Shown in pieces: positions 6,001-27,554 of a stretch of DNA of 64,000 nt. The position numbers and the translations under genes are program-made. Position 1 is the first letter of the stretch. Each line of letters opens with the position of its first letter. This DNA comes from Cyanophora paradoxa CCMP329 (Eukaryota > Plantae > Glaucophyta), in the NCBI GenBank assembly GCA_004431415.1, contig QPMI01000188.1, positions 1 through 64,000 on the forward strand, read 5' to 3'. Below the pieces are notes generated by a model. The model was given only the letters and a program-made list of their open reading frames with translations, ran no database searches and had not been told where the DNA came from.

Positions 6001-7684
6001 CGCGAGATCCAGAGCCAGACCTAAACCGCCCTTCTAGACCTAGACCGCCTTTATCTTGACCTAGCCTAGTAGACCTCGACCGCCCTCATTGTCTTCGCCT
6101 CTAGGCCTGGCGTAAAAAAGCCCTTACAAATCGCTCCTCTCTCTTTCACCTAAAGCGAGATCAAAACCTGGCCAGACCTAGCCCGGCGGCCCTTCCCTTC
6201 TCTTCTCTCCGCCTCCGGGCCCCTCACAGAAGGCCCCGCGCGCAGCGGACTTCACGAGCGGGGCGCTGCTGGAGGCCGGCCTCGCCTCCTTCGCCCTCAC
6301 CGTCGCCCAGAAGGCCCGCGCGCTTTGAATTCAATTTGATCTGCTCCCCTCGATCTTTTGCTCTCGCGATTTGATTCGATTCGATTCGGGCGCAGGTCGG
6401 CGTGGCTGCGGCCGGTGGGGCCGACGACGCCGCCGCCGCCGCCTCGGCCGCCGCCGCCGCGGCGCTCTCCGCTCTCCCCGAGTCCCGGTTCGGCTCCCGC
6501 CCGGGCCCTCAACTTCGAATTTCCGCCATCTTCTTCTCCTTCGATGCCAATGTATACGTAGGTGCGACGTGGAGTCGGACGAGGGCGGCCCTTTCCTCTT
6601 CCTCTGGTGCTCCCCCGCGGTGCGCGCGCACACACAGTGCCCGTACCCCCCTACCCCTGACGTCGACGTCTCCAGGACGCGGGGGCGGCGGCGCGGGTCG
6701 TGCGCGCCCTCGCGCGCCGCCGCGTCCGATGCTGGACCGAGTGCTCGGTGCCTATATATAGCCAGCGCCCCTCTCCTGTGCCTCTAGCCGCTCGGCTCGC
6801 GCCGACCTCCCTCAGGGCTCCAACGACCCGTCCGCTGGCCCCTCCGGCTCGGACCTCGGCGCCCGCGCCGCAGTGCGCGCACGTCCCGCCCGCCGCCCCC
6901 CCCCCCCCCCCCCCCCCTCCCCCCCTCCCCCTCCCCCCTCCCCCCCCCTCCCCGCCCGCCGACGCCGCGCAGGTTCGCTGCGGGCCTTTGTACCCCTCCT
7001 CTCCCCCGCCTCCATCCGGGACCCCCTCCTCCGCGATCGCCTCCAGGTCCGCGTACCCCCCCCACCCTCCGTACCCTCGCGTACCCCCCTCCGCAGCTCG
7101 CGGAGCTCAACAAGCGGCCGATCTTGCCCCTCCTCCCCTCCGACCTCCCCGTGCGCCGGGCCGCGGTTTCGGATCCACATACCCCCCCCTCCCCTGGATC
7201 ACGTACCCCCGTGCAGACTCCCTCCGACCTGCCCCCGGAGGGCGAGCCCTTCGCGTACATCGCCGCCGGAAACGTCGCCCTCCTCGCCGTGCGCGTACCC
7301 CCCGAAACAGTCCCGTCGGGGTTCGACCCGGACCCCGCCCGCAGAATGTGCGCCGCCTCTTCGCCTCTGTGCCCGCCCTCGCGCCGGCGCCGGCCGCGGC
7401 GCCGCGGGAGGCGCCCAGCGAGCGGGGGCCGCTGGAGCGGGAGCTCGAGGATCGGCGGCGGCGGAGAGAAGAGGCGCGCCTCGAGATCGAGTCAGCGCCC
7501 GCCGCCCCTTCCAGTCTAACCGCGCCGCTCGCAGTTGGCGGCCCGCGTCCGGCAGATGGAGGCCAGCGCCTCGAGGAGGGTACCCCCCGGCCAGAGCCCC
7601 GCGGCCGGCGCCCCGAGCCCACTCGCCCGCCCCCCGCCCTCCTCCTCACCTTCCGCTGGCTCCAAAGCTTGCTCGCTCATGTAA
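1..7684 (+). CDS. Large multi-exon ankyrin-repeat protein (5' partial; may be more than one gene)
   Basis: Ankyrin motifs recur across short introns: [21 protein letters not shown] (~290-360), SALQYAALEGRAPVVALLLE (~1425-1490), TPLVAACAWGHYECAALLLEAGA (~2040-2110), SALGLAASRGHVAAARALLALGADP (~2340-2415), TALQAALES..LLLARGAALD (~3540-3620), GRTPLHHAVAFG (~5035). The frame is open from the window start. Apparent 1-bp frameshifts near 320 and 470. The 3' end is approximate. Confidence 0.7.
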
Positions 7685-7874
7685 CCCTTGGATCGTAGAT
7701 CTTCCCTAGAACGAGAAAGGAAGCAGCTCGAGTCAAAATAGACTGAATTAAAGATCACCGATCATGATTCAGCGAGTGAGCCGCTAGCGCTGATCATGAG
7801 CATGTCACGAATTCGCAAAAATAACATTAATTGCAATATATATTATTATTGCGAGAATCAGATTGAGAATCAGA

Positions 7875-10681
7875 TCAATACGAGCTGCCGACGGCGGTGC
7901 AGTGGAATTCCTTGCGGGCGCCGCCGCACGCGCAGGGGCGGAGGCCCTTGGCCCTCGCCCAGGCGCGCATATCGCCCTCGCTGCTGAAAGCGTAGCCCGT
8001 GATGCCGGGGCGGGCCCGGCTGTACACGTAGTTGTCGCGGTTCATCATCACGCAGCTCAGACCCAGGTCCTCCCCCTCGTAGAGGGCCGGGCAGCCGGCA
8101 AAGTGGTACGTGCACGAGGGCCCTGTCGCCGATACGAGCACGAAGCAAACTGACCGCTTGCCCCAGTACTGGTACACGAGCTGCGCACGCGAAACCCGTT
8201 TCGATTTAACGCATTTGATCATGAGGACGCCTGCTCGCAGAAAAGAAGTTCCTCGAATATAATGTTTCGCGCACTTTCTTCGCAGACACGTCGCGGATCA
8301 CTTCAGGGCTCGGGAGCTCGCGATTCAGATCTTGAACGCCCCCAGCTGTGATCATCGGCCCGGATCCCGAGCGGTCCCGCTCCTGCAGCTCTGCGCCGCG
8401 CGCGGCCGCGAAAAGTGATCATGACCGAATTAATTATATCGAGTTTTAGAGTTAAGCGTTTAGCGTTTAGCGTTTCGCAGTATCGAGGTTTGATCCCTAT
8501 AGCTACGTATACCGACGTCCAGCTCACAGCGCCCGGCGCGCACTGAGACCGTCGTCGGTGAAGAGCTCGAGGCAGCTGCCGTCGCGATCGCTGTACATTT
8601 TCGGGTGGTACCGGTCGTCGCGGATGTGAGCGAGCAGCGCGCGCTCGTCCGCCGCCTGCCGTTGTTCGTCCGCCGACAGACGCTGCTCATCCGCCGACAG
8701 CCGCGTGTCAAGGCTCTTCATCTCGCGCCTCAGCTCCTGGAAGTACTCCTGCGCTCTCACGATAATATGCATGATCAACAACCGCCTTGATCAAAGATAT
8801 CGATTAATTGCAAGGGGGGGTACCCCCTCCCTTGCTCCCCTGGTGAGTTGGTGCGGCGTACTTTCTGTGTTAGCAATTTTTGTAAGATGCGATTCTTTGC
8901 ATGCGCTCTCGTATAGGTGTGATCGCATCGTAGCCGCTGCGAGCGGCCGAAAAAAATGCAAGGGCGGGGCTGCGCAAACATGTCGAAGTCGCGCCTCACC
9001 TGCTATCGCTATACGCGCCGGACCACGTGCTCCTGATTGCTCTCGATGCGCTCTACAAACTTTGTCATACATGCCCGGGCTCGAGAAGCGGCGTGCGGCG
9101 CGCTAGGCCGCCTCAAGTACCTGTTGTACCGGGCGCCGAAAAAAAGCGCTCCTGAGAGTTGGAGGAGATCGTGTTGCCGTACCCGTACTTCGTTCTCCTG
9201 CGTCGTCATGGCCCTTCGCCCGGGTCCGCGGCCGACAGACGTAGTCGCAAGCGAAGTTGAGCTTTGCTCGAGCTTGCAGCCTTGCTCCGACCCGCGCGGC
9301 TGCCATCCGGGCGGCAAATGCACTCGCTGCGGGAAGCACTTCACTCGGCAGGACAACCTGTATAAGCACGTTCGCCAGTGCAGGAAGAAGGCGCCCGCGA
9401 CGCCGCGTTTCGGTGCGCGCCGCTTGGACGAGTGTGCGCCGATGGTTCTGAGTGCCCCGCGCCCGCCGTCAGCAGATTCAAGCTCGGCGATTCCGATCTC
9501 TTCAAACATGCCACACTCTTGCCAGATGGAAGGCCTAGGTGATCTCGCGCGCCGCCCGGCAATCCCAAGCTGGGCGTGCACATTCGACGACGGCTCTGAC
9601 AAGGCCGGTACGGTCGGGTGCAGATCTTGCCGGACTCCGGTTCAGGCGGACTTCAGCTCGGCGATGTCAAGCCCTTCAAGCGCAAGCACGGGCGGATCAC
9701 CACTCGCACGCCTCGGCCCGCGGCCGGGGCGCCGGACTGGATGCGTGGCTTGACCCGCGGCCGGCGCTCCGCACTAGCTGTACTACGGTAGCGGAGGTGG
9801 CGGCGTCGCAGTATTCGCAGCTGCTCCTAGTACGCCGCGCCGGGCTGCTTCCCTGCCCGCTGCTCCCAGCTGCTCCGCGCGCCCGCTGCTTCAGCAGCTG
9901 CTCCCTAGGCCTAGGCGCCCGTCGCCCCGCCCGCTGTTTCAGCTTTGTCGACTCCAGGTTCGCCCCGCCGGCGCCGCTGCTGCCGGCGCCGCGCGCGTCA
10001 CCCGGCCGACCTCGCTGGGCCCCGCGCCGGCGCCGCGGCTGTCCGGGGCGAGCTGACGCCTCGGTTCTGCGCAGGCTATGCGCAGGGCTCGGCGCCACCT
10101 GTCGCTCCGCCCGCTTTCTCGCCCGCCGCCCCGCCGGCTGCTTCAGCTTCGTCGACTCCAGGTTCGCCCCGCCGCTGGTTCGCCCCGCTGCTGCTTAGCA
10201 CCTGACCCGGCCGCCTCCGCTGGGCCCCGCCCCCACACGGCCGCTGTCCGGGCGAGCTGACGCCTCGGTTCTGCGCATGCGCAGGCTACGCGCAGGGCCC
10301 GGCGCCACCTTTCTCTCCTCGGATGCCGCTTTTCCGCCCGCCACCGCCCTCGCCTGCCCGCCCACCTGGTGCCGCCGCCCGCGTCGCCACCCCACCTACC
10401 CGCCTCGCCACCCCGCCCGCCTCGCCCAGCCGCCCGCCTTGCCTCTCTAGCTGCCCCCCCCGCCCCCTCCCCTGCGCCCCCCGCCTCCCCCCCAAGTACC
10501 CTGCAATGTGTACCAGTACCCCCCCTTGCACCTCCGCGCGCGGCCCGCACTTGCCGCACTTGCACAGGGCCGGGCGCGGTCTGCTAGTATTGCGATCGGC
10601 TGCAGCTGCGCATGTGAGCTTTCCGCGCACCTCGTACCGCTTGCGGTGCTCCGGACGGCGCGGGGGCTTATCGATATCCAT
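7875..10681 (-). CDS. Small 4-exon protein, copy 1: coiled coil plus C-terminal Ada-like His/Cys motif; intron 1 interrupted by a transposon
   Basis: Exons: MDIDKPPRRPEHRKRYE (10681-10631); EYFQELRREMKSLDTRLSADEQRLSADEQRQAADERALLAHIRD.. (~8748-8545); ELQERD..PEVIRDVSAKK (~8390-8275); LVYQYWGKRSVCF..TYHFAGCPALYEG..GLRPCACGGARKEFHCTAVGSSY* (~8180-7875). Colinear with the paralog at 11290-12158. Confidence 0.75.
9207..9415 (+). CDS. C2H2/C2HC-type zinc-finger fragment carried inside the element
   Basis: KCTRCGKHFTRQDNLYKHVRQC (C-x2-C-x3-F-x5-L-x2-H-x3-C) in ORF 9037..9753, followed by a GTGCGC donor-like site at ~9413. Confidence 0.5.
9920..10320. repeat. ~205-bp imperfect tandem duplication inside the element
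   Basis: CAGCTT.GTCGACTCCAGGTTCGCCCCGCCG...GAGCTGACGCCTCGGTTCTGCGCA..GGCGCCACCT occurs at ~9940-10100 and ~10144-10310. Confidence 0.85.
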
Positions 10682-11289
10682 TTGCAGCTGCGGCGCGCCC
10701 CGCGGCGCGAAAATCAGAACGTACGCGCGCGTGTGTGAACGCGCGTCGTTTGCATAGCGTTGCACCCGCTCAAGCTTATAATTATAAGGGCGCGGCACGT
10801 GCACTGGCCACCGGGCGCGCGGCGCGCGCGCCGATCGACTAACCCCGCGGTCGACGTCTTGCGCCCTTGACTGACGCGGCCGGGCCTCCAATCTCTCTAA
10901 GATTTTCGCCGATTCGATGCCGATTCGACTCATGATCAAGGCCGGGCCCCTAGCCTCGATGCCGATTCGACTCATGATCAAAGAATTCGGATTCCTCTAG
11001 ATCTCGATCTAGCTATATGAATTTTATCATAGTATATAAATCGATATCTGGGGAGGAATTAATTTGTTAAGGGCCAAAACCGGGCATGAATCATTGAATG
11101 CATTCCGCGCCCGCCTGACTACGCATATGCAGCTGTTTCATGTATTGAAATTAGCTTAAGCCTTTTGATCATATGCATGATCATTAACTATAAAGCCTTG
11201 AAGCGTATACGTAGCTGTAGCTATATATAGAAATAGCGCGCATGATTGCTTCACAAGCTCAAGCTTGTAATTGTAATTGTACATGTGGA

Positions 11290-12158
11290 TCAGTACGAGC
11301 TGCCGACGGCGGTGCAGTGGAATTCCTTGCGCGCGACGCCGCAGGGGCGCAGGCCCTTCGCCTTGGCCCAGGCGTGCATCTCGCCCTCGCTCCCGAAAGC
11401 GTAGCCGGCGAGGCCCGGGCGGGACCGGCTGTAGTTCACGTGGCCCAGGTCCTCCCCCTCGTAGAGGGCCGGGCAGCCGGCAAAGTGGTACGTCGCCCCC
11501 GTCGGCGTCACGAAGCACACCGACCGCTTGCCCCAGTAGTAATAGACGAGCTGCGCACCCCAGATTAAATTTCGATTTCTGAGCGACGCCGATGCAGAAA
11601 CTGAAACTAATTATAAGCCTTGCGAGCGAGGCCTAATTATATGTATAAGGAACAACATTGAATGAATCTCGAAGTCTATAAATTTGCGCGCACCTTCTTC
11701 GCGGTCAGGTCGCGAATCACGTCGTGCGGACTCGGGGGCTCGTTGAAGCTTGAGGGCCCGAAGCTGTCCCGCTGCTGCAGCTCTGCGCACGCCCCGCGAA
11801 AATTACTCGACTCGATTCCGGCAACGCGAAAAATTAAACGATTTGCAACCCCGTCCCGCGCGCGGGGCCGCGGGCGGCAGAGCGCTCACTAAGCACGTCG
11901 TCGGTGTAGAGGCAACTGTCGTCGCTGTTGGGGTGGTCGCGGATGTGCGCGAGGAGCGTCCGCAGCGCGCGCTCGTCCGCCGCCTGCCGCTGCTCGTCCG
12001 TCGCCAGTCGCTCCTCGAGGCCCTTCACCTCGCGGCGCAGCTCCTCGAAATACTCCTGCGCGCTCGGAAATTCATCCTGATGTCTCGTAGATCCGCTGCG
12101 AGCTTATGCGCACCTCGTACCGCTCGCGGTGTTCAGGGCGGCTCGGGGGCGCGTCCAT
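11290..12158 (-). CDS. Small 4-exon protein, copy 2 (apparently intact)
   Basis: MDAPPSRPEHRERYE / EYFEELRREVKGLEERLATDEQRQAADERALRTLLAHIRDHPNSDDSCLYTDDVL / ELQQRDSFGPSSFNEPPSPHDVIRDLTAKK / LVYYYWGKRSVCFVTPTGATYHFAGCPALYEG..AWAKAKGLRPCGVARKEFHCTAVGSSY*, with GT-AG introns. Confidence 0.8.
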
Positions 12159-12543
12159 CTGCGCCGCGGCCGTGAGAAGCGAAGTCAACGTTGAGTCGCA
12201 TGCAATATTAATGCGGCGGGAAATCGGCTGCACCTGCTCGAAGGCGCCGGCGCCGGGCGCGCGGTCGTCGCCGATTTCGAAGTTCTGCGCGCATGATCAT
12301 GAAAAGCCGCATCAGACCGTCGTATGCAGAATTCGGGCGCGCATTGCGCGCGCGGCCTGCAGCTGACCCCGCGGTCTTGCGCCCACATTGTGCTGCTGCT
12401 CTAGTTTCCTCGTTTTGAATTTCTTCTCCCCTTGGTTTATATCCAAGCTACAGTTCGATCTATAGATCTAGATCGTACGTGAGCTCGAGCTAGCTAGGAA
12501 TTCGCAATACAATTAATTGTAAAGTTCTCCGTACGTATAACAA

Positions 12544-12590
12544 TTGCAAGGGGGGAAAGAAGACCGAAGGTCTTCCCCCCTTGCTTCCCG
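12544..12590 (+). mobile_element. Hairpin terminus related to the 5' end of the 8808 element
   Basis: AATTGCAAGGGGGG-AAAGAAGACC-GAA-GGTCTTCCCCCCTTGCTTCCC has the same AATTGCAAGGGGGG...CCCTTGCT frame as 8806-8840. No matching distal inverted repeat was found. Confidence 0.45.
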
Positions 12591-13802
12591 TTCCCGGAGG
12601 AGAGGCGGAGGCGGAGGAGAAGGAGCTCGAGGTAAAGGGGAACGGCGCGAAAGCGGACCAGGGGGATCAAGAACATGCAAAAGGGCAGTCAAAGTTCTCC
12701 GTATACGCATACTAAGTTATTGGGGAAGGGTAAAACACTTCCCCTGTCCCTCTCCTTTGGGCCCAACCCTACCCCAAATCGCGTTTCCCCGACCTCCTCA
12801 AAACCCGGGCCGCGCGGTACACCCTGAAAGCCCATCCCCAGGGGACCCCGAAACCGTGTCTCCCGGTCCCGTCCGACCAAAGGGTGATCCAGGAACAGGC
12901 ACCAACACCCGGGACAAAAATGGGTCCAGCGACGCACAGGGAGCAGATATACGGGCCAGACCAGTTCGAGGTCAATGCTTGCATCATGCTTGACATTCCG
13001 TTCTGCAGGAACGAGGCCGGGCACGAGCGCGGTCGCGTGGGAGGACGCCGCGCGCGCTAGCCAATCACATTGGAGAGTGCGAACTTACCCTGCAAAAGTC
13101 TTTTTACGGTCCCCCCCAGCCGTTAATATTAGGTACCGCGCTTATTCTCGAAATCCACTGCGAGAACGCCAGATACATTACCCCCAAGTGAAACTAAATT
13201 CAAAATGTCAGCGCGTTAATTTAATAAAAAACGGCAATTTTAATTTTGCCCCCCCCCCCGCGGATCGATATCGATCGATCGAAGATCAGTTTAGGTTTTA
13301 AAGAAATTTTCATGCATGAAGTTCGCAGTCGCAGTGCCTACGCGCGTTCCACGCGCGTACCGCGCGCGCGCGCGCGTCACGGCGTACGTACCGGTACGGA
13401 CCGGGTCGGACCCGTACGCCGTGACGGTTACTACGGTACGTGCCACGGTGCGCCGCCACGGACCACGGTGCGCGTCGTGACCGTCGGACCGTGCGCATGC
13501 ACGTGTGACCGTCGGACGCGGGGCGACGCGAGCCGCCGGCCAGCCGCTCGCGACGACGACTCGTCCACTTGAGTCAACGTCATGACTGTGCTCGACTCTG
13601 TGAGCTGCCAGGCTGTCGGGCAACTTCTAAAAAAAATAAAAAAAACCCTTCACCCCTTCACCGGTACCACAGTACTACCACTACGTATATATACGATCCG
13701 ACTCGGCGTCGAGTTGGCGTCGTAACTTGGCGATCGGTTGACGTGTGTCACCACTGTCACGGTCCCGCGCGAGTCGAGTTTTCCCCAGCAGTTTAAGCTG
13801 GC

Positions 13803-13967
13803 CAGTGGCGTGCATGGAAAGTGGTAGATAACGGAAGTAACGGAAAACTGAAGTGGCGGATAACGGACGTTTCCGGAAATTCCGGAAAGTAACGGACAGC
13901 TTAAGTGGCGGATAGCGAAAAGTAACGGAAAGTAACGGAAACACGTACGCGTGCCACGGTGTGCACT
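13803..13967. mobile_element. Degenerate MITE-like unit with (T)AACGGA(A) and AAGTGGCGGATA internal repeats
   Basis: Starts CAGTGGCGTG and ends in a disrupted CACG..CCAC..CACTG. Contains about 6 TAACGGA motifs and 3 AAGTGG(C/T)(G/A)GATA motifs. Confidence 0.35.
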
Positions 13968-14636
13968 GTACTACGGTAATCTGCCGCTGTTAACGTTCTA
14001 CTGCTATAGCTACTGTAGGCTTTAAACGTAGCTACAGGCTACAGCCTGCAGCAGCAGCCGCTGAGCTGTCGTTACCCGGCCGCGGTTGCGCTTATTTAGC
14101 AACCGTGTACATACCGTAGTACGTATATACTAGTGCTACTGCGCATGCAGCTAGCCGTTGAGCGCTGCTGCGCATCCTTGCAATTGTGCAGACGGAGCAC
14201 ATCATGACCAGCAGGTAAATTCGAAGTCAACGCGTACGCGTACGCAGCGCTAGCGAAAACAGTGATTATTTCGAAGCCGCTGAGCACCCGTTCCTTAAGT
14301 AGCGCGACTGTATATTCGAATACGTATACGAAGCCGAGGAAGATTATTCTTTTAATTTGTCCTGAAAACGTCTGCATGTAAATTGCTTTCTTCCTGCATG
14401 TCCGACAGTCATCATGGCATGGTCATCAGTAAATGGGGGGGTGCGGGGGGGCTTGCCCCCCTGCTTGTAACAATATATATTTATATTGCGCATATATGCG
14501 CATGCGCACGGAACTCCGAATTAAACACATGCGCATGCGCATGCGCATGCAAATTCAATCTCAGTCGCGTGTTCTGAAGTCGACAGACTGGACGGATCCG
14601 GACCCACGGCCGGGACCCCGCCGCCGCGGGCGCCAC

Positions 14637-14788
14637 CAGCTGCAGATCTAGAAGAGGCCGCATCCTGCCCGCCGGTTCAGACGTCCTCCGCCCAGCCTGG
14701 GCCAGGGGTCCGCGAGTCCTCTCAGCTGAGGCTCTCGAGCTCAGCTCATTTACTCGGATCGGCAGCTGCAGATCTAGAAGAGGCCGCA
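14637..14788. repeat. Direct repeat CAGCTGCAGATCTAGAAGAGGCCGCA x2
   Basis: Identical 26-mer at ~14637 and ~14763. Confidence 0.8.
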
Positions 14789-15262
14789 CTCGGGAGTATA
14801 CCTTTACAGTTCTTGCAATGCGAGCCACATGCCGCATGCTGCAGCTGGCCATGGCCGCGGGCTCTAGTTATAAGCGCGCTAGCCTATAGCTAGTAGCCTA
14901 GTAGCAATCGCAATAATAATCGTCCGGCGTCAATCGCCAAGTCGTGATGATCACAGTACAATTTTCGTTGCTGTGAGACGTTTATCTGTGAAAAACTTTA
15001 GCTATCATATGAACGATACATATACACCGATTGAGAAGCCCATTTCAGGGCATGGCTCGATCGTGGTACGGATATCGATCTAATACTTCAAAAAAATCCT
15101 ACTGCTAATTATATAACCGAAAGCGAAATTGCGAAAATTGGAAGAAGCGCTTTAAGACGCTCGCCACTATTTTATTGAGGCCGCCTAGGCGCCAAGCCTT
15201 GAAGGTAATGTAGTCCAACGGTCGACGACGCTGCGGCAGTGTCGAGAGATCGACGCATTGCT

Positions 15263-18200
15263 TTAGGTCGCCGCATGCAGCGCGAGGGCGACGGCGATGG
15301 ACACGAGGCCGCAGAGGAAGCTCGAGAAAAGCGAGCTCTGACCGCGCAGGGGTAAGCGATGAGCAGGAGAGCGATGGCATGGGGCTAAAAGCTCGCGAAC
15401 CGCGTAGGTGGACGCTGCAGCATTCGGCCGGTAGGGCACCGAAGCGCTGGTTCCAACCGGCGTCCACTGGAAAGCCTGCGCGCACAGCGTTGGAAACCAA
15501 AAAAAATTTAAACTTGAAAGAAGGATTGCGGGTTATGTATAAATGGACGTTCTGCTGCCAGGCTGAACGACAGCGAACCTTGCCGATAACGATGGGCACG
15601 AAGGCGGGCGCCCCGGTGGCCGGATCGATGCGGAGGTCGTACTGCGGAAAAGTGCGAGTGATCATGAGCTCATCCTGTTTCGAACTCGAGCCGAATGGCA
15701 GTGCTGGCTTAAAGCTTACGGCGGTGTTGGCTGCAAACTGGAGGAGGCGACGACGCGCAAGTGCCGGGGCCTCTGCGAAAGATTGGATTTGAACAACAAT
15801 GTAGAGATATCGATGAAAACTTGGAGAAAGCTTCGGCGCACTGAATTGGAGGATCGCGTTGCTGCCCTCCGCCACGACGGACTCTTCGGTCGCCGGGCGC
15901 TCCATCTTCCCGTCCACGCTGACAATGGAAACTTCCACATTGGCCCCGACCTGCGGATATGAAATTGGCGGCCCAACAAACGCGACAGGGTAATTTGAAC
16001 CCTCATTATCAAAGCATCCCGGCGCACCGCCAGAACGCCGGTGACTGGGACCCTGATGAACTCGTTCGCGCCGGATCCCGTCTGCCAAACGGAGCCCCTT
16101 TCAGGCCGCCATGTACATGCATACGTGCAGATGTGTTTGCAACTTCAAGTTCAGCTGCCAATTACCTGCCGTGCAGAGAACTCGGTCCGATTCAGGTCGA
16201 CCCTGTACACGGCATTGCCTTTCCCGTCCTGCCCAGGTGAAGCACGAGCGTTCATAACGTTAACACGGACAAGGTGCACGTGTATTTTCGGCTTTTAAAA
16301 AAGCACGATACCGTGTCGAGCCTGAAGTCGTTTTTGGTGAACTGTATATTTAAAAAGCAGTACTCGTCAGACGATGGAGCCGGGGACCCTTTTCGGACAA
16401 GGGGATTCAAAGTCGAACCGTGAAGGAGCCGATGACGACCTGCTTCGTCTCGTTCATGGTGATGAACGACTGCGCGCGGCGCGGCGGGCTTCAACGACAA
16501 CGACGTCGACGCCGGAGACGCCGAGGGGGGCTCGTGATCAGAGGGGCCGCACCAGCGGCGGCACGGCGGCCGGAGTCGGTGCCGGTGTGGGCTGATTCTG
16601 CTGCTGCTGCTGGCTGGGCGTCGCCATGGGCGTCGGAGTGGCGTCTGTCGTCGAGGGGACCGTGGTGGGTGTCGGGGCAGCATCCGGGGACGTGGTAGGC
16701 GAGGGAGACGGCGTGGCCAGCGCGGAGGGAGACGGAGAGGGCGACGGGGACGGCGAGGGCGAGGGGGACGGCGTGGGCGACGGAGTGGGCGACGGGGACG
16801 GCGAGGGAGACGGCGTCGGGATGTACACTGTACGCGATGCGCGAAACGGTAAGCACGGATACATCGATGCCCAGGAAGATGCGATCGAATGAATATTTAT
16901 GCGCGCTGTGCGCCGCACGCGCACCCGTGCCGTTCAGCCTGTGTGCAAAGACGAATGCGGCGCCCAATGTGGGTGCTTCTCCGCGCCAGCTGGCATAGAA
17001 GACCGGATTGGTGCGAACACCGATGCTGGTCAATCCAAGGCCGACGTGAGCGGAGCTGCGCATGCATTAAAAACCGTTCGGAGTAGGCAACGCAGAAACC
17101 CGATCCCGGCCGCCGCCTATCAGCAACCTCGAAGCTCATGATCACCTCGGGTTCGTGACCGAATCGATCCTCTGTTCAACCACCTCGCCGCCCGTGGAAT
17201 TCACTGACAAGATGAAGCTGCTCGATGCGGTGCCCGTAGCGTCTTTGTCGTAGATCGACGCCAAGAGCCGCCAGTACCCGTACCTTCGAGTAGGAGCGAG
17301 GTTCATTGTTCGTAAATGAAACGACAGTTCAACGGTTTTATAATTATCTGAATCGACATGGCGTACGCGTTCTTGACAACGGCAAGGTCTATCGGAAACT
17401 TCCAGGAGGCGTGGGACGCGAAGATCGACCCCGTGACACTCGACCCCGTCGCATCGATCTGGTCATGATCATGGATTAATATTGAATGTCAGTTTCAATG
17501 TCAGTTTTGAATTATACGATGCAGATCTAGAATTACGAACTTTGGTGATGGTTCCGCCGAATGCGACCTGCGAAAGAGCATCATTGGACAAATGAGCGCA
17601 TTCTTTTTTTATTACAGATCTTATAATTATATATATATATATAGCGCAGTCGACGTCTAGATCTGTTTTATCACAGATCTAGATCTTCTGAAAAATGTAT
17701 ACTCACGTAGAATATCGGTTTACCGCCGACGTCCTCTACAGTCATCGCGACAGGAAAGGCCTGGGCAGTGTTTTTATCCGTCGGTAGCGTAAGTCCGCCC
17801 AGCGATGCAGCCTCCACGGTGAAATCGGTTCGGAGACCGGTGCCTGTTAACGTTGAGCATGCGCATAAGCGCGCCGATCAGCGTACAATAACATAATTAT
17901 AATGCAGTGGCGGGTGCGGGGAAAGCAGAGCATAGTGAATGAACCCACCGTCCTCTGCGTAGCTGAACAGGCTAGGTAGCGGAAGCGCGAGCAGACCGCG
18001 TCTGGCAGCGGCTGTCGCCGCAACGCCGATCCAGTAGAGGCGGCCTCCGTGCGCCGCGATTGCCGAAGGAAGGTAATGATTCCCTGGCGTGATATAAATT
18101 CGTTTCATCAGTGTTTCGCTGAGCTGATGCTTCGCAATTGTTATTGAACGAACCGGCGATGGCTGAGCTCGAGGCTCCGGCCGCGGGGGTTCCGGACGCG

Positions 18201-19213
18201 TCTATGTTGAAGGAGTAGAAGGTTTTCAAAGTGTTTTGAGAGGGATCGGAGTTGAGAGTGACGGCGCCGAGAAACAGTTTGCCACCACCACCATCTCCAG
18301 CTCCGAGGAAGAAGAGCTTCGAAGCGCTTCCGACTGCCAGAGGCATTTTCTGCAAGCCAGTATTGATCTTCCCGTTCCTGCGCCGAACGCAAGACGACTC
18401 TTGAGCAGAAAGATTGTGGTGACGGCCCTCGCGATCGTATATATATCATGATGACGTAGAAAAGACGAGATATATATGAACGTTTAATGCACCCGAACAC
18501 AGTAGTAGCAGCGATGGCTGTAACAGCGGAAGCGCCGGCGGCCGGCAACCCATCCGACCACTTAACTGTATTCAAACGGTTGATGTCAGCGAGATATTCA
18601 GATAGGAGTAGAGGACACAAAATCAAGTGAAACGCGCGCACCTTCAAGATTACCCGCAACGAGCGAAGATCCGCATGTGCTGTCCACGCGAAAAATGCCG
18701 TTGTAACCGCTGACGTACAAGCTGTCATCGAAGGTCGAGTACGCCATTCCTGCACGATACACGATCACATGTGCCACGGTGAGCGCAAGGTTTCCGACGC
18801 TCTTCTCGACCTATTCATAAGTAACCGTATACATGCATATGCATTTAATTTTCCACTTAACTAATTCCCATATGCGCTCACCGAGAATGCCAGAAAACTG
18901 TGTCGCGGAACCCACTCCTACGGTCGAGGTACCGTAGGACGAGTAAGTCTTCCCAGCGCAGAACAGGGAACTGCCGGCCTCGAGGCTGTCGGGATTCGCC
19001 GGAGGGGCCGCCACGACTGCCGCACGCGCGCGTGCGTGAGATTTTGACGACGGCAAGCGGCCGGACAATCCCGGCCGCGGCTGCACCAAGAGTGCACTTT
19101 TAACTTGGCGGCGCAGATCTAGACGCACCGCAGGCGACGAGGATGGAGGCGACGGCGAGCCGCATCGCGAGTGCGCGTGCGGTCGCGCGTCGCGATCGAG
19201 GCGAGCTGTCCAT
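15263..19213 (-). CDS. Multi-exon secreted/GPI-anchored surface protein with (SP/TP)n stalk
   Basis: N-terminal MRLAVASILVAC signal-like stretch; globular exons (e.g. SKLFFLGAGDGGGGKLFLGAVTLNSD); [15 protein letters not shown] tract at ~16700-16820; an RRRLLQ motif at ~15740-15755; hydrophobic C-terminus SSLFSSFLCGLVSIAVALALHAAT*. Confidence 0.7.
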
Positions 19214-19844
19214 GGGCGATCTCATTGCGATCGATCTCTTGTCTTGAGCTCGCGGATGCCTCGAGAACCAATTCTAGATCTGCTCAGCTGTGGCTGCAGC
19301 TGCGTCCGGCGCTGGCGTTGAAGCCTTCTTGCCAAGTTGAGGATTTTCGACAACTTGTAAATTTCCGTCAACAGGAGGACTCCGGGACTCTGAGGCGCAC
19401 TGAGGCACTGCGGCACTGCGGCAAACGATAACTGACGTTTTTAACTGTAGTACTCGCGGGCCGCGACCGCGAACATGGCCAGTAATACAGTAATTCAACG
19501 TTAACGATTGATAATGTTACTCACGACTCAGAGTCGCAAGTACCGTTACTACCGTGTGAGCTCACTGAGTCACATGTACATGTACAGTGAGCACGTGTAA
19601 CCGTTCAACGGTTGAACGTTTGGGATCCGATGATCCTGCGGATTCCTGCCAGGATGTCTCAGTGAGTGACAGTGACAACTACTGACTATATGCTATAGCT
19701 TGTAATCGTCAGTGATTTCTGAATCCTCCGAGGCTCGCGATATCGATCGAGCTTAGGACCTGCGCATGCCTCATCGAAGACTCTGAGCCTCGAAACTCTG
19801 ATGAAACTTTGAAAAACGTTTTTGGACCCGGACGTTCCGGACCC

Positions 19845-19972
19845 CCAACAGTGAGTCACAGTAGGGTCCGGCCGAGCCGCTGGAAACAGCGGCGCGTGGG
19901 GAGGGGGGCAACCCCCTCCCTGCCTGGCCGGACCTATCCGAGCAAATTTTTTTTCCAACAGTGAGTCACAGT
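19845..19972. other. Multi-hairpin cassette between 18-bp direct repeats
   Basis: CCAACAGTGAGTCACAGT at 19845-19862 and 19955-19972. Between them an outer stem GGTCCGGCC/GGCCGGACC encloses hairpins GCCGCTG-GAAA-CAGCGGC and GGGAGGGGG-GCAA-CCCCCTCCC. Confidence 0.7.
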
Positions 19973-21084
19973 GTGACAGGGAGCAACATGTACAAGGACA
20001 CCCAAATCATTGAATTGGGGCCCCAATGCGGACACCCGTAAAAAAACTCGGCTCTCACGGAATGGACCAGGCAGCTTTTAAGAAAAATAAATGCGATAAT
20101 GTTTTTCCCTTCACTGAGTCACTCGAGCTCGCAGACTTCGAACTCGGGACGTGCATATGACTTGGCCCGTGGCGGTTGAAGTTGGCGCACCGCCGCGCAC
20201 CGTGCGGCGCACGGTGGCGGTCGGGTACTGTAGTACGCCGGCGTAACGCCGCGTACCAGTACCGTCACGGCAGTACGTGGCACCGGCCGGACGCTACCGT
20301 ACGCGTAGCACCGGTAGCGCTAGCCTGCAGGACATGCGACAGGCGCGCCGCGCGCGCGGCATGCCGCAGTGCATTCGTCACAAAATAATATTGTCGAAAT
20401 TAAGACTTCACCGAAGTGTATGCTACCTAGCGCTGTCGCCGCGAGCCTGACGAATATAAACGAAATAAAGACGCTGTCGAAGATTCCTACGTTTACAGTA
20501 GTATACGTACGTATAACCGCAGGACTTGCGCGCAGGCTCGCGGCGGCCACTGCAGCTGCAGTTCCAGTTCCGCAGCGCCCGTCCCCCCCCGCGCCCCTAG
20601 GCCTTGTCCTCGTGCGTGCGCTCCGGATCCTCGCCCGCGCGCACCCCGTCCTCCGATCGATATCGGAATTCGTGCGCTCCCCGCGCCGGGGCGCCCCGCT
20701 CCCTCCGCGGCCCCGGGGCCCCCGCGCCCCGGCTCTGATGCCGCGCCCCTTGCCCATCCTCAAGCCCCCCCGCCGCCCTCCTCGCCCTCGACGTCAAGGG
20801 ACGAGCTGGGACGTCGACCGCGCAGTCGCGCGAGTCGGCGCGACTAGGAAGCAGGGACGGTACCCCCCCATAATCCCGCCAGTATCAAATACTAGTATTC
20901 GTCAAAGCGAGGGTCTGATCATGATGAATATCGACGAAATAACGACAGTGCACACAGTTTACAGTTTACAGTAGTACGTATAGCCAACGCCGCGGTATAG
21001 GTAGTACGTACCGTACTACGCGGCTACGCCTAGTACGGTCACCGGGTACCGGGTACTACGGCGGGTAATCTTTAGGTACGTAGA

Positions 21085-23165
21085 CTGAGCCTCGGAGGTC
21101 GGGACTCGGGACTCGGGAGTCGGGACTCGGGACTCGGGAGTACTAGTCGGAGTCGGAGTCAGAGTCACCGAGTCGAATATTTGATACTTGTGAATTGAAA
21201 AATTTGAATGGAGACAGGGGTACCAGCAGCTGACTTGTCTATGGCGAATTCGAAGTTGCGGGGTTGACGAAAATATGCATATGATGCTGGCGATCCATAA
21301 TTTCGTCACGATTTTCGGGTTTTGTCGAGACTGTACTACGGTACATGTGGCCGGCAATTTACCAAAACCCAATTTGTCGAAATTAAGTCTCGACAAAAAT
21401 TCATACAGTTACAGGAGATCTACTCGGATCATCGGGAGTCGGGAGTCGGAGGAGATTGTCGAATCGACTCGGATCGTCGAATCGACTCGGGAGTCGGAGG
21501 AGAGTTTTTCTTGTGCTAAAGTTTAAGTAGTAAAATAAGTACCAGTTGATTCGAATCGGGAATCGAAAATAAAAAGCACATGGGGCGCGGCCGTCGGGAA
21601 TTCGAATCGATGTATTGATAATTAGATATCGATATCCGGACCGGGATGACGGCGGGATATCGATTCCCGGTGTTCGTATACCTATACAATTCAAATTCAG
21701 AAATATCAATTACTGGCTTTTCAAACCCAAACCCTTCGATCAACGTTAACCGACTTTTTGCTTTTCTGTTTTATTTGCTTTTACTTTCTTTTTCTTTTTT
21801 GTTTTTATTTGCAGACCGTCGAGTTTGGGAGTCGACGGGAACGGGTCCTCGCATGCGCATGCGGAGTTCAGGGGAACCAGGCTACCAGCAGCTGACCTGT
21901 CTATGGCGAATTCGCAGTTGCGGGGTTGACGAAAATATGATGCCATGATGCTGGCGATCCATATTTTCGTCACGATTTTCGGGTTTTGTCGAGACTAGCG
22001 CTAGCTGTGGGCCTGCAGCTGTGGCCGGTAATTCACCAAAACCCAGTTCGTCGAAATTAAGTTGACGAAAATTTGTTCGTTTACAGTAGTTCTACTTGGA
22101 TCGAGTGCATCGGATCATCGGATCGTCGAATCGACTCGCGATCGGGAGACGGAGGAGAGTTTTTCTTGTTACCGTCTTTTCAAACCCTTCGATCAACCGA
22201 CTTTCTTCTTTTCTTTTTATTTTCTTTTTCCTTTTTGTTTTGATTTGCAGACTGTCGAGTCGGGGTCCTCGGGAAGTCGACGGGGACTCGGCGGCGAGTC
22301 GGCGGACTCGGCGCCCGAACTTCGGAAGAGCTGCGGATCCTTGAAATACCGTAGTACTCCTGCGCATGCGCCGCGATGATGCGCGCTCGGAAATTCATCC
22401 TAATGTATCGTAGATTCACTGCCAGGCTGAGTCACCGCGAGCTTTACCAAGTTAGCAGTTTAACTTAGCACACCTAGGCCTCGTACCGTCGTTCGTGCGT
22501 CACGGCGTCACGGAACGGGTAACGTATACGTACCGCTCCCGGTGTCCAGGGCGGCTCGGTGTCCATCTGCGAGGCTGCGCGGCTGCGCATGCACATGCGC
22601 AGCGAGAAGCGAGGTGCACGTCGTCACCGCCGGCGTCACGTCGATTCGCGCGCAATAAAATATAATCTTCAATTAAATCGAATCGGCCTTGTCAGTCTCA
22701 GAGTCTCGAGTCTCAGAGTCTGCATGCGCAGCTGCAGCCTGCAGGCTGCAGCTGGGCCGCCCGGCCGCGCCGGGCCCCCGGCCGGCCCCGGCGGCCCGCG
22801 GCGCGCCGGCGGGCCCGGGGAGGGCCGGGAGGCTGGGAGCCTGGGCCCGGCGCCCGGGGATCCGGACTCGCGATCGCGAGTCGCGATCCGGACTCGGGAT
22901 TCGGGAGTCGGGACTAGCTATAGGGCTGTGGTCGCTCGTTGTTGCTTCGCTCGCGAGGTTCTAGCGGCCGCTACCGTACGCGTAGTACGCTCGGCGTTTT
23001 CCGCCAGCGGCGCCTCCTCGCTTGGCGTTTTTTTGTGGCCGACAGGCGCCAAAAACAGCCCCACCCCGCTTTTTCCTCATCTGAAGGTCAACCTGGGTCC
23101 TTTTTCTGAGTCGCGACTCGCGACTCGCGATCGGGATTCGGGAGTCGGGACTCGGGAGTTGGGTC
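21085..23165. mobile_element. Decayed DNA-transposon-like repeat block with GGAGTC/GGGACTC subterminal-type repeats
   Basis: (GGGACTC/GGAGTC)n clusters at 21098-21175, 21435-21500, 22860-22915 and 23105-23160. A diverged tandem duplication spans ~21220-21860 and ~21880-22310. No transposase ORF was seen. Confidence 0.55.
22341..22660 (-). pseudogene. Relic third copy (exon 1, intron 1, start of exon 2) of the 11290-12158 gene
   Basis: GCGCGCTCGGAAATTCATCCT.ATGT.TCGTAGAT and GTACCGCTC.CGGTGT.CAGGGCGGCTCGG match 12058-12150. The copy is interrupted by small insertions and truncated. Confidence 0.75.
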
Positions 23166-23450
23166 CGAATCGCCGAGCCGGGAATTCGAGCACTTCATTC
23201 AAAAAAGAGTGTGAGAGAGCTCGAGAGGCTCGAAATGGTGAAAGGAGGCGAGGGGTACTGTTCAAATCAACAGCGCCCTATACATAATAATTAAATGCAG
23301 CGCTCCCAAAAGAACATCTAATTGAATATTGCAATTGATGCTCGCGGTCGATCGTGAATCGCCAGGAGCTATAATTACATCACGCTGTCTATGGCTAAGC
23401 CTCCAGCAGTTGCCCCCAGGCCCCGGGCCGACATGGACAGCCTGGCAGCG

Positions 23451-26400
23451 CTAGCGGGGCGCGGCGCCGGCAGCTGCAGCGGAGATCTCCTTGGCGCGGC
23501 GAGCGAAGAGCATGTCGATCTCCCTGCGCGCCCGCTCGTCGGGCGCGCCCTCTTTCGCCTCCTCCACCAGCATCTCCACCTGCAGAGCATCGATATCAGG
23601 AAGGCGAGATTAAGGAGGCACCTGGCTTTATGTTAGCTCTATGTCTCGCGAGCTGGGCATGCGCAGACAGCTTTAATTTGCTTTAAATTTAATCATTGAA
23701 TTTGGCGCACCATGACATCCAGCGAGTCGAGTACAGTTTTCAGCGCGTCCTCCTCCCTTTTGCCCGCGTTCGGAATCTCATCCTTCAGCGTTTCCAGCAG
23801 GCGCCGCCGCAGAAAGCACTCCGGGCGGAGCACCAGCACGGGACCAGTGAGCGCTAGACGATGCAGCACGCGGTATCTGGGCAATCAACCGATTGAGAAT
23901 TTCAGTCCTTGTTCCACAAAGTAAATAAAAAATTCTAGAGCAGCAATTGCAACGTTTTAACGCTCACACTAGCCCGTCTGCTCTCAGAGCAAAGCGGCCA
24001 GCGAGCCACGCCATGGTTTCCTCCGGGCCCCACTTTAGCACCTGCGGTACGGTCAGCGAGGACACTATTTATACGCGAAGATTTAAAGCCAAATTCGAAA
24101 GGCGCGCCAAACCCGCGACTGGATTCAGAGCTAGCGCTGCGGGCGTTGCAGGCGCCACCTCCCCCGCCGCCGCGGATTCGAAGCCTCCGGCCGAGGGTGC
24201 AGCTGCAGATGACGGGAGCCCCGGCGCAGGCCCGGGCTGCGCTGACGCCTCGGGAGGTGCGGTCGTGGCCGTGGCGGGCGCCTCGAGATGCAGCGAAACG
24301 GATGGATCCAGAGCTCCAACGGGTACAGGTGCAGGGGCTGCAGCTGACGCCGTAAGCGCCGCGGATGTGGAGCTCGCGATCGATACCGCATGCGCATGTC
24401 CGGATCCGGCACTAGCGCTGTTGAAACTCGAGCTCGAGCTCGACGATGGAGCAGCAGCCGAGGCCGGCGGCGTCGAAGTCGACGTCGCATCAATATCGCG
24501 GCGGGAGCTCGAACCGCGTGTGCAGCCGGCCATGGGCGCCGTGGTCGTGGTTGTGGCCATGGGCGCATGCATCGATATCTCCGGACCGGCAGCCGCCTCC
24601 GGTTCCGCTGCCGATCGCAACGCGTACGACTCCGTGGCCGGCCGCGGCATGCCACAGGACCCGGAGCTGGAGTGACTGGCACGCCCCGAGCTAGAAGAAG
24701 GCTCACGATCGAGCCGTGCAGCAGGCCTTTCGATCCTCTGCTTCTTGGCGGGAGGCTTCTCCGGTCGTGGGCCGGGCTGATCGACGTCATCATCACGATC
24801 ACGATCAGCTCCAGCTGCGTGACGGGTCGAATTCGATATAAATAAACATGTACAGCATTAATCATCAGCGGCATCAGCGGTTCGCCGGGCGCGCTGACGC
24901 GCACCCGCGTCCTCACGATCGTCGTGGTTCTGCGCGATTTCAGAAAATTGCGAGGGATGTTGAGCGAGCAAGGATCTCATGATAATAATAAAGCGTGCGG
25001 GATTCGATTGCAAGCGCACCATCGGAGCCGGTGCCGCTCCCATATCCGCGAGAAATTTGCGGACAATCGGGAAGAGGACTACGGGATCCTTGCTCTTCGG
25101 CAGATTTGCTAAGAATGCAGCGCGCTGCAGCGCCTCGAAGAAATTCTCCTTTTTGTAATCTGCATTTGAAATCGATGCGGACGTGTATTATGATTACGTA
25201 AGCGTGCGATAGAAACCCCGCGTGATGCAAATTTGAAACGCACCGCTCTCCGGAAAGTTCAGCGATTGTTCTGTCAGCTTCGACGTGAAGCCCTGCGCCT
25301 TGTCGACCCGCATGCACGTAATTATGAAGCGATCGCGCAGCCGAGTAGAATTCTGCCCACCAGTCAGCCTCGCATTTTATATCTATACAGATATCGATCT
25401 AGAACTACGTATACAGCACAAATCGGCCATGCGCATGCACACCTCGAGCGTGTTAGAGACTGGCGTGGTGAAATGCTTGCCCCTCCAATTGAAGTAGCCA
25501 CTTGAAGAACGCGTACGCTTCCTGATCATGACCCGCATCCCTTTGTATCCACATCCTGCGGCGAATGTCAATGAATCAAATTCAAAGCTGCAGGAGGCTA
25601 ATTATAAAGCGCAAGTAATCTATAGGCTACCACGTGCACATTAATATTAGTACACGCATACGTGCGCACATACACGTATACACGCATATATATAGCGCTG
25701 CGCATGCGCGGCCGCAGGCGCGCCTTTTTCGACCCGACCGGAGCCATCGCGATCGCCGCTCTCCGAATCCAGCTGCACCTGAAGCTGCCGGCTCGAAGCG
25801 GCTATACGTCAATCTCTAAGAATTTGCACAAAGCTTCGGCGATATATACGCCTTAAGGCGTGCTCGATGAACGCACACAGTCGCGTATGAATTCGCGAAT
25901 CGCAGCGCGACGGCCTTCGTCTGTGGCGCTCTCGCGCTTGAGGCGCTCCTCCAGCTTGCCAGCCCCCAAATCGGCGTAGAACTGCTCCTTCTCGTACTCT
26001 GCACGGTCATAATTGTGTAAATGTAATGATGTCATATGGATGTGATGTTCTTTAAGTTGATGTGATGGATGGGGGAATGATTTCAAGTGAATATAGTTAA
26101 AATTGCGCCCTGCCGAAAACATAGACAGCTGCAGCGCTAGTGCAATGCATGCACACCAGACCGATCGAAGTTCAGCTTGTCGTCCGAAACGCAGTCCGAC
26201 TCGGGGATGCCCGCTTCTCTGTCGACGCGCTGACAGCAGATAATCGCTCGGTCGCGAAACCGGGCCGTTTCCTGCACACGCGCACGCGCATGCGCGCGAA
26301 CGATTGCGAGCAGTCAAACGATCGATATCGCGGTGTCGCAAAATAATAGATAAACGCGCGCTATAGCCAAAGGTTGGCGCGAACCTCAGCAGTTGCCGTT

Positions 26401-27554
26401 TGCACACAGAAGGAATGCTCGCGCCACAAAAAGCTCCCGCGCCAGCTGCCCTTCTTCCGTGTGACTCCGTGGAAGCCGGACGTGCTAGTGGTCTTTCGAC
26501 GCCGACCCCGCAACGTCGACGGACGACGAGCTCGAGGCTCGAGCTCCTCCTCTTCATTGTCGGAGCTCAAGTCGTCTTCATGATCAGATTTGGTGCTAGA
26601 TTCATCTCCGGATCCTCCGTCTCCTTCATCCGAGTCGTCTTCGTACTCGTCTTCTTCGTCTTCTCGAGCTCGCTCAGCGCCCTCGATCGTTTCATCGACA
26701 TCCAAGTCGATCGTCTCCTTCGTTGTAGGCTCCTGCGGCACGTACGTGCACCGATTGATATATTCCGTGCGCATGCATATGGTCAGATCTAGAGCTGCTC
26801 CTTGCGCATGCTATCGCGGACTAGTAATGTATCGCGCTATCGAATTCATAATATCGATCAGACCTGCGAAGGCGAATTTGAGTGGTACCGCTTGAAGAAG
26901 GCCAGCACTTTGTCGCGATAATCTTCGTCTACGGATAGATCTTCTGGGAGTTCGAGTTTATTCTCATTCAAAGCGACGTAGAACTTCTCTTCTGTGTACT
27001 CTGAAAGAAAGAAGCAAAAGTCAGCATGCATTTGGGCACATGCATTTGCATATCATTTGCACAGCGAGAGATGATAGATCGTGTAAATGTAGAAGAATTG
27101 GTTTCGAACCTGAAAGGGGATAATGACGAATGGAGTGCCGCAAGGGCTCCCATCCCGCCTTCTTGTCAACAAATCTGCATATGATCGCGAGGCGGTCCCG
27201 GATTCTGGTCGCTTCCTGTGCACGTGCACATGCGTGCAGAAGTGGTGAGCTCGAGTTCACGTGCACGTTTCAGATACTTGCGAAACGCGACTTGCAATCG
27301 GCGGCGCGGACCTCTTCCGTGTCGCCTGTCATCGTTATCTGTATATATATATGCATATTCAAAGCAAACTCAGCAAAACTCATCGCCCGCGATATCGATA
27401 TCGTGCACGTGGCATGAAAAAGATGACGCACGTCGCGCTGATGCCAGCTGAAACGAGCTTTGAAACGGCCATTACTCATCCGCGAGATACCAGGCCGCGT
27501 TGATATCGATGCTGCGCATGCTTGACCGGCCATAGCTGGCGCCCGCTGCGCCAT
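23451..27554 (-). CDS. Multi-exon protein with three AP2-like DNA-binding domains (possible frameshift)
   Basis: Spliced repeats: GISRMSNGRFKARFSWHQRD-ITMTGDTEEEATRIRDRLAIIC..HYPLSEYTEKKFY; SGFHGVTRKKGSWRGSFLWREHSFCVQTATAEETARFRDRAIICC..KLNFDRSEYEKEQFY; GYKGMRV..GYFNWRGKHFTTPVSNTLENSTRLRDRFIITC..SLNFPESDYKKENFF. Also an acidic linker, an Ala/Ser-rich linker and a helical C-terminus. Confidence 0.7.

Follow-up and report, generated by a model that had tools for sequence, protein, structure and literature searches.

It was found that a 64,000-nucleotide stretch of the genome of the glaucophyte alga Cyanophora paradoxa CCMP329 (contig QPMI01000188.1 of assembly GCA_004431415.1, positions 1 to 64,000 of the forward strand; below, the window) carries a recurrent 11-mer of the form X-C-rc(X)-G-X, in which X is a triplet and rc(X) is its reverse complement. 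Relative to a single X this is an addition of 8 bp, and the 11-mers are referred to below as +8 scars. We consider it probable, at roughly 0.6, that they are germline-fixed excision footprints of a family of cut-and-paste transposons, which has 3-bp target-site duplications (TSDs) and 5'-C...G-3' termini and is nicked one base inside the element. A second class of scars in the same DNA has the form X-rc(X)-X (+6 scars).

All matches to X-n-rc(X)-n'-X were counted for each of the 16 (n,n') spacer pairs, and the numbers expected by chance were obtained from Markov models of order 1, 3 and 5 plus simulation. In the whole window, 57 of the 149 matches had C and G as their spacers, and the next commonest pair was found 16 times. 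This dominance had been predicted in an earlier note on the same DNA. The 11-mers listed in that note (at 6062, 13375, 13440, 14894, 15194, 19562, 19603, 19625, 21333, 21940, 22317, 22347 and 22419) were all present; its estimate by eye of more than 25 was an undercount. The scars were concentrated between 9501 and 24000, where 47 C/G matches were observed against 0.38, 0.71 and 1.65 expected under the models of order 1, 3 and 5, respectively (largest simulated count 6; Poisson P of about 10^-50). The other 15 spacer pairs gave 30 matches in total in this region, with 0–7 each, and several of those with G/C spacers were register by-products of tandem C/G scars (19405/19413, 22498) or chance continuations with a period of 8. 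The G+C (GC) content is 70–79% across the window, with a lower-GC island (52–64%) at ∼11–28.5 kb. GC-rich DNA of low complexity yields a few C/G matches of its own, such as CGC-C-GCG-G-CGC at 1509, 2667 and 6455. The expectation of about 1 per 65 kb given in the earlier note holds for uniform composition, but the real composition gives ∼4–7 in the GC-rich 35 kb from 28501 to 64000, where the 5 C/G matches seen are at background level.

In all 47 scars between 9501 and 24000 the repeat X...X was exactly 3 bp, and the middle triplet was always rc(X). With a repeat of 2 bp, C/G was not the leading pair, and with repeats of 4 and 5 bp there was one C/G case each. Longer retained ends, namely +10 forms (X-CA-rc(X)-TG-X) and spacers of 2+1, 1+2 and 3+3 bases, showed no enrichment. 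The motif is strand-symmetric, its reverse complement having the identical form. The base before the scar (T12 G15 A10 C10) and the base after it (G12 A12 C16 T7) followed the background composition; because these outside bases are random, the C and G spacers are not copies of the flank, and they stand there whatever the flank, as had been claimed. X spanned 23 of the 32 strand-collapsed triplet classes. Scars with the same X had unrelated flanks, except the neighbours 13479/13507 and 22696/22711 and the overlapping 19405/19413. The diversity of X and the unrelated flanks demonstrated that the scars arose by independent events and not as copies of a repeat. In addition, 45 sites with one mismatch were found against 15.6 expected (38 against 11.5 without simple triplets). 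These ∼30 extra, decayed sites bring the number of +8 events in the 9.5–24 kb stretch nearer to 75.

An independent check was made with Illumina-derived Logan contigs from three further DNA runs (X2, X11 and X12), seemingly of the same strain. Over most of 19000–23800 the contigs of all three aligned to the window with neither a difference nor a gap (identical stretches 19000–19889, 19925–20489, 21303–21988, 21967–22314, 22286–23018 and 23070–23800), which rules out an assembly artefact. The word shares of the runs, 0.91–0.94, reflected contig breaks at high-copy segments and not variants.

That the scars are insertions was demonstrated by paralogous copies, in which a single X stands where the scar is found. 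Five +8 scars could be polarised in this way (ATG 21940, GTA 21333, TAC 22347, CTG 22419 and the nested TCA 22416), in agreement with the paired cases of the earlier note. Two tandem copies, A (21218–21514) and B (21880–22169), were compared. Copy A carries ATG-CAT-ATG (+6, 21275), and copy B carries ATG-C-CAT-G-ATG on the neighbouring ATG; without both scars the copies are identical there, so that the ancestral sequence was the same. Likewise, taking out the GTA scar at 21333 and the TGT-ACA-TGT that encloses it restores the sequence common to copies A and B. The copy at 22325–22585 contains three scars (TAC, CTG and the enclosing TCA) that are absent from its paralogue at 12030–12175; near 12090 the paralogue has neither the CTG nor the TCA scar, and the collapsed copies are equal in length at the scar sites. 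Among the polarised cases a +8 scar was found inside another +8 scar and inside a +6 scar, and tandem re-use was found too.

The +8 scars, with the evidence for each, and the region that contrasts with them are as follows.
6062–6072: TAG-C-CTA-G-TAG, isolated in the GC-rich left part (spacer scan).
9780–11203: four perfect +8 scars, at 9780, 11025, 11089 and 11193 (spacer scan).
13375–13615: six perfect +8 scars, at 13375, 13416, 13440, 13479, 13507 and 13605 (spacer scan), in an intergenic tract that consists largely of nested scars.
13951–14420: six perfect +8 scars, at 13951, 13968, 14056, 14112, 14275 and 14410 (spacer scan).
14894–15565: three perfect +8 scars, at 14894, 15194 and 15555 (spacer scan).
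17327–18781: two isolated +8 scars, at 17327 and 18771 (spacer scan).
19329–20721: thirteen perfect +8 scars, at 19329, 19377, 19405, 19413, 19562, 19603, 19625, 19726, 19804, 20005, 20111, 20362 and 20711; 19405/19413 is a tandem double +8 scar.
21037–21097: two perfect +8 scars, at 21037 and 21087 (spacer scan).
21333–21343: GTA-C-TAC-G-GTA within the +6 scar TGT-ACA-TGT of copy A (comparison of copies A and B).
21940–21950: ATG-C-CAT-G-ATG in copy B (comparison of copies A and B).
22113–22327: two perfect +8 scars, at 22113 and 22317 (scan and contigs).
22347–22357: TAC-C-GTA-G-TAC (single TAC in the paralogue at ∼12051).
22416–22434: nested pair, the outer TCA-C-TGA-G-TCA being split by the inner CTG-C-CAG-G-CTG at 22419–22429 (collapsed alignment).
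22498–22721: three perfect +8 scars, at 22498, 22696 and 22711 (spacer scan).
23438–23448: +8 scar in the 3' untranslated region (UTR) of a minus-strand gene (RNA-like contig and translation).
23691–23701: +8 scar in an intron (∼23580–23710) of the same minus-strand gene (RNA-like contig).
24001–28500: contrast region of low GC content, with 66 +6 scars; +8 scars are absent, decayed ones included.

The +6 scars of this genome have the same 3-bp unit and joining logic as the +8 scars, and the two classes are interleaved and nested in 9.5–24 kb. Unlike the +8 scars, they have no retained base, keep the reading frame, and occur also in GC-rich and coding DNA. From the likeness it might be supposed that one transposase makes both classes by cutting at the border (+6) or one base inside it (+8), in concert at both ends, but several results make this rather unlikely. 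If the nick were chosen independently at each end, the ratio of 46 +8 to 151 +6 scars would give an inside-nick probability of 0.36, and ∼167 mixed +7 scars would be predicted. In fact, 23 were seen (11 X-C-rc(X)-X and 12 X-rc(X)-G-X) against 19 mirror forms with the wrong base (12 and 7), which is no specific excess; the mixed forms were ∼6-fold enriched for C and G alike, without the predicted asymmetry, and many of them overlapped adjacent +8 or +6 scars. The two classes were also distributed differently. In low-GC DNA, 23 +8 and 34 +6 scars were counted in 19–24 kb, against 0 and 33 in 24–28.5 kb (Fisher P = 6 × 10^-6); for the full regions the numbers were 46 and 151 against 0 and 66 (Fisher P = 8 × 10^-7), where the count of 66 leaves out dinucleotide-repeat triplets. 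Decayed +8 scars, too, showed no excess in 24–28.5 kb, with 3 found for an expected 2.6. In the +8 scars the middle position of X had a mild preference for A/T, being A or T in 31 of 46 (67%) as compared with 68 of 151 +6 scars (45%, P = 0.011) and with a background of 43% (P = 0.0009). Finally, the decay per site, estimated roughly from the ratio of one-mismatch to perfect scars, was ∼5% for the +8 class, and for the +6 class ∼9% in the same region and 14–17% in neighbouring regions. The lack of a +7 excess, together with the differences in distribution, target preference and apparent age, argues for two separate agents, or for two strictly concerted modes, and against the single system implied in the earlier note. 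Compared with the agent of the more widespread +6 scars, that of the +8 scars would be more recent and, in this stretch, more confined (∼9.8–23.7 kb).

For the +8 scars as transposon footprints, we infer the following route. The transposase would nick, at both ends, the strand that bears the 5' end of the element, 1 nt inside the element, and the flank would thus retain a 3'-OH on the terminal C of the element. Attack of this 3'-OH on the opposite strand, exactly at the border between flank and element, would free the element and leave a flank hairpin X-C-rc(X) with the C at its tip. Host enzymes would then cleave the two hairpins, each 3 nt or more away from its tip, the 3' overhangs could pair through their complementary rc(X) and X triplets, and fill-in and ligation would give X-C-rc(X)-G-X. 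The element would retain intact 3' ends for integration, and its lost 5' C might be refilled when the gap is repaired where it next inserts. The joining of X-C-rc(X) and rc(X)-G-X hairpins on 3 nt of complementarity, as suggested in the earlier note, proved to be internally consistent and strand-symmetric. This symmetry, with a C 3' of the flank triplet on each strand, is needed by an inverted-repeat element with C...G ends. Short-range re-insertion would be expected to cluster the +8 scars locally, as at ∼9.8–23.7 kb, and scars that shift the frame would survive only outside coding sequence.

Excision by way of flank hairpins, which host enzymes open before the ends are joined, is established for hAT, Transib, RAG (V(D)J) and MULE, where opening off the tip leaves palindromic additions complementary to the flank (P nucleotides) (PMC5499845). 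The +8 scars share these additions but differ from all of them in their 3-bp TSD (hAT 8 bp, Transib 5 bp, MULE 9–11 bp), in the predicted offset inside the element, which would place an element base at the hairpin tip, and in the junction, which is formed every time through the same microhomology. Like the nick predicted here, that of the hAT transposase Hermes lies one nucleotide off the border, but on the flank side. Tc1/mariner elements have their non-transferred strand cut internally and leave terminal bases behind at the donor site, which resembles the +8 scars; in contrast, their TSD is TA, 2–3 bases are retained, and neither a hairpin nor a flank palindrome is formed.

The likeliest donors would be CACTA-type elements of the CMC superfamily with CACTG ends. 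CACTA/En-Spm elements (CMC: CACTA, Mirage, Chapaev) are cut-and-paste transposons with 3-bp TSDs of no fixed target and 5'-CAC...GTG-3' ends, and they leave footprints. The 3-bp non-specific TSD and the C...G ends that the spacers suggest, with C as the first and G as the last base, would fit this superfamily, whose TSDs are non-specific and 2–4 bp long (3 bp for CACTA). As expected of footprints, the scars are bracketed by a 3-bp repeat and contain the rc(X) palindrome, and in the five polarised cases the paralogous site is free of the insert. Other donors were rejected. PIF/Harbinger needs a 3-bp TSD of TWA, but X is diverse, with TAA/TTA found 0 times among the +8 scars; hAT needs an 8-bp TSD, but the repeat here is 3 bp long and the 8-bp insert is no direct copy of the flank; Transib/RAG-like elements need a 5-bp TSD, at which length one C/G case was found; and Tc1/mariner needs TA, but X is a variable 3 bp.

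Several results weigh against the assignment of the +8 scars to such a transposon. The earlier note had called for a family with terminal inverted repeats (TIRs) beginning with C and 3-bp TSDs, but in the window no C...G-ended element with a 3-bp TSD was found that could serve as donor, and Pfam scans of 20 open reading frames (ORFs) of the window gave no transposase domain. Pairs of CAC...GTG with a TIR (at least 12 of 16 matches) and a 3-bp TSD occurred at chance level in the window. The best candidate, 17202–19714, with CACTGAC ends and the TSD ATT, was rejected, because its TIR is 7 bp and its ends show no further similarity (alignment score 18 against a null of 17.6 ± 2.2). The scars display only the first base of the element; because X-CA-rc(X)-TG-X is not enriched, CAC... 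ends are not demonstrated by them. Plant En/Spm and Ac footprints are heterogeneous, and uniform footprints as found here, with one stereotyped 8-bp product, are unusual. To our knowledge, the cleavage chemistry of CACTA transposases has not been determined biochemically, and the one-base offset is purely what we infer. Furthermore, no scar polymorphism or new scar was seen in the contigs of the three runs, which seemingly represent one strain and whose building drops rare variants. Broader scans of the window also gave nothing above chance, whether for generic pairs of TIRs with 3-bp TSDs, where GC-rich low complexity swamps the signal, or for all 4-mer termini with TSDs, CACTG/CACTA ends and inverted repeats.

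The absence of a local donor might suggest that no mobile element was involved, and that a domesticated or host nuclease forms hairpins with a 3-bp stagger, the C being added by a polymerase, e.g. a Rev1-type dCMP transferase. A C-adding activity could in principle produce the extra C 3' of the flank triplet on each strand. We regard this as improbable, however. A single break does not duplicate a triplet, and the repeat X...X would demand an extra step; the C at the tip must precede closure of the hairpin on the attacking strand, which is better accounted for by a base already in the DNA; and the regional clustering and the separate +6 class suit mobile elements better. Less probable still is template switching in replication or repair, such as snap-back synthesis during polymerase theta-like end joining at ordinary breaks: this kind of repair is known to yield templated inverted insertions, but they would vary in length and have no fixed bases, whereas the scars are always 3 bp in unit with C and G. 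Chance, a copied repeat family or an assembly artefact is refuted for the 9.5–24 kb set, since GC-rich low-complexity DNA does produce a few matches but 47 were seen against at most 1.7 expected, scars with the same X have unrelated flanks, and the short-read contigs are identical to the window.

The load of scars was estimated by iterative removal of perfect ones. Between 9501 and 24000, 50 +8 and 139 +6 scars were removed, together 8.5% of the sequence, compared with 0.4% in the Markov simulation; the +6 count is an upper estimate, because some +6 matches are natural palindromes. The description of the system as a major mutagen in the earlier note is thus fair in a historical sense, but its present activity or domestication was not borne out: no scar differs among the runs, and the ∼30 scars with one mismatch imply the ∼5% decay per site given above. 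Overall, the interpretation in that note was partly supported.

The density of +8 scars was 2–4 per kb where the local GC content was <0.6 and mostly <1 per kb above 0.6, and that of in-frame +6 scars was flat, at 7–13 per kb over all GC classes. Genes in the window are spliced: an RNA-like contig connects 23190–23576 with 23708–23800, in agreement with a minus-strand GT..AG intron at ∼23580–23710. Both +8 scars with transcript evidence are non-coding, one in the 3' UTR (23438, which begins 4 nt after the stop codon of the minus-strand gene) and the other in the intron (23691). The placement of the +8 scars fits selection that removes frameshifting scars from coding DNA.

Other observations concern the scars in or near genes. 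The TAG stop of the minus-strand gene at 23190–24000 falls within a +6 scar, AGC-GCT-AGC (23447–23455, plus strand), and a +8 scar follows directly after it; scars may therefore set the present C-terminus of this gene. Between two paralogous coding segments (7873–8188 and 11288–11558) there are six frame-preserving gaps, five of 6 bp and one of 15 bp. None of the gaps is still a perfect X-rc(X)-X, and they may be decayed +6 scars. In the GC-rich DNA from 29000 to 64000, +8 scars were at chance level and +6 scars at about twice chance. The left 9.5 kb, although GC-rich as well, tolerates +6 scars readily, and the scar load changes sharply between adjoining regions.

Copies A and B showed further features. 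The 196-bp indel between them (21527–21722) was considered as a donor and rejected, having neither a TSD nor C...G ends. With its +6 scars removed, copy B keeps at 22005–22026 an 8-bp tandem duplication, CTGTGGGC / CTGTGGCC, which is absent from copy A and whose two halves are identical but for a G/C substitution in position 7. The duplication resembles a footprint of the hAT type (8-bp TSD) and might possibly represent a third type of scar. A recurring module, GTCGAAATTAAG ... TTTACAGTAG, was found at 20380–20520, 20905–21000, 21300–21420 and 21965–22100. Judged by contig depth at 20449–20609 and 21898–22058, it has tens of copies in the genome, although simple repeats may inflate the first of these values. 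Other copies of the module diverge from the one here exactly at its +6 scar (20501).

A 92-bp insert at 19863–19954 lies between 18-bp direct repeats (19845–19862 and 19955–19972), contains inverted repeats and ends on the right in a run of T. Its contig depth is ∼200-fold that of the adjoining single-copy DNA, and RNA-like runs contain it too. In appearance it is a retroposed element of high copy number, of the small-RNA or short interspersed element (SINE)-like kind, with no Rfam or tRNA match; the Rfam and tRNA scans were empty. The low-GC island (11000–28500) contains long minus-strand ORFs, among others at 15105–16088, 16252–17063, 18141–18755, 24131–24916 and 25853–26774. None of the ORFs of the island scored above the curated Pfam cut-off, two weak matches (E 0.04–0.1) being all that was found, and a search of a protein atlas with them gave no match. 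One of them has a paralogue of 60% identity, EukProt tig00000806_g4331.t1, which was the sole homologue found.

That excision can leave palindromic footprints has been known since the 1980s, but from rare marks at single loci that differed in form. In this DNA a single exact product of 8 bp is repeated ∼50 times within 14 kb. The literature that was searched, including the 2019 Cyanophora genome paper, held no description of such scars, and nothing was found in it on CACTA footprints with retained terminal bases. What is new is the exact 8-bp product with a terminal base retained on each side, its density, and its separation from the +6 class. Footprints rather than element copies would then rank among the main sources of insertions in this genome, and the fixed C and G amount to a testable prediction of the cut site of a transposase with 3-bp TSDs. 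With frame-breaking +8 scars in non-coding DNA and frame-keeping +6 scars everywhere, the genome would show selection sorting one kind of mutation, and the scars could serve to place duplications in order, as markers with a date. More tentatively, and with less assurance than for the footprint reading itself, we suggest that the +8 scars may record the cleavage chemistry of CACTA/CMC transposases (a flank hairpin formed after a first nick that lies one base in from the 5' end), and that at least two separate and extremely active systems with 3-bp TSDs may have swept through this alga, leaving uniform footprints that might now, in place of the elements, make up close to a tenth of its non-coding DNA and shape its introns, UTRs and stop codons.

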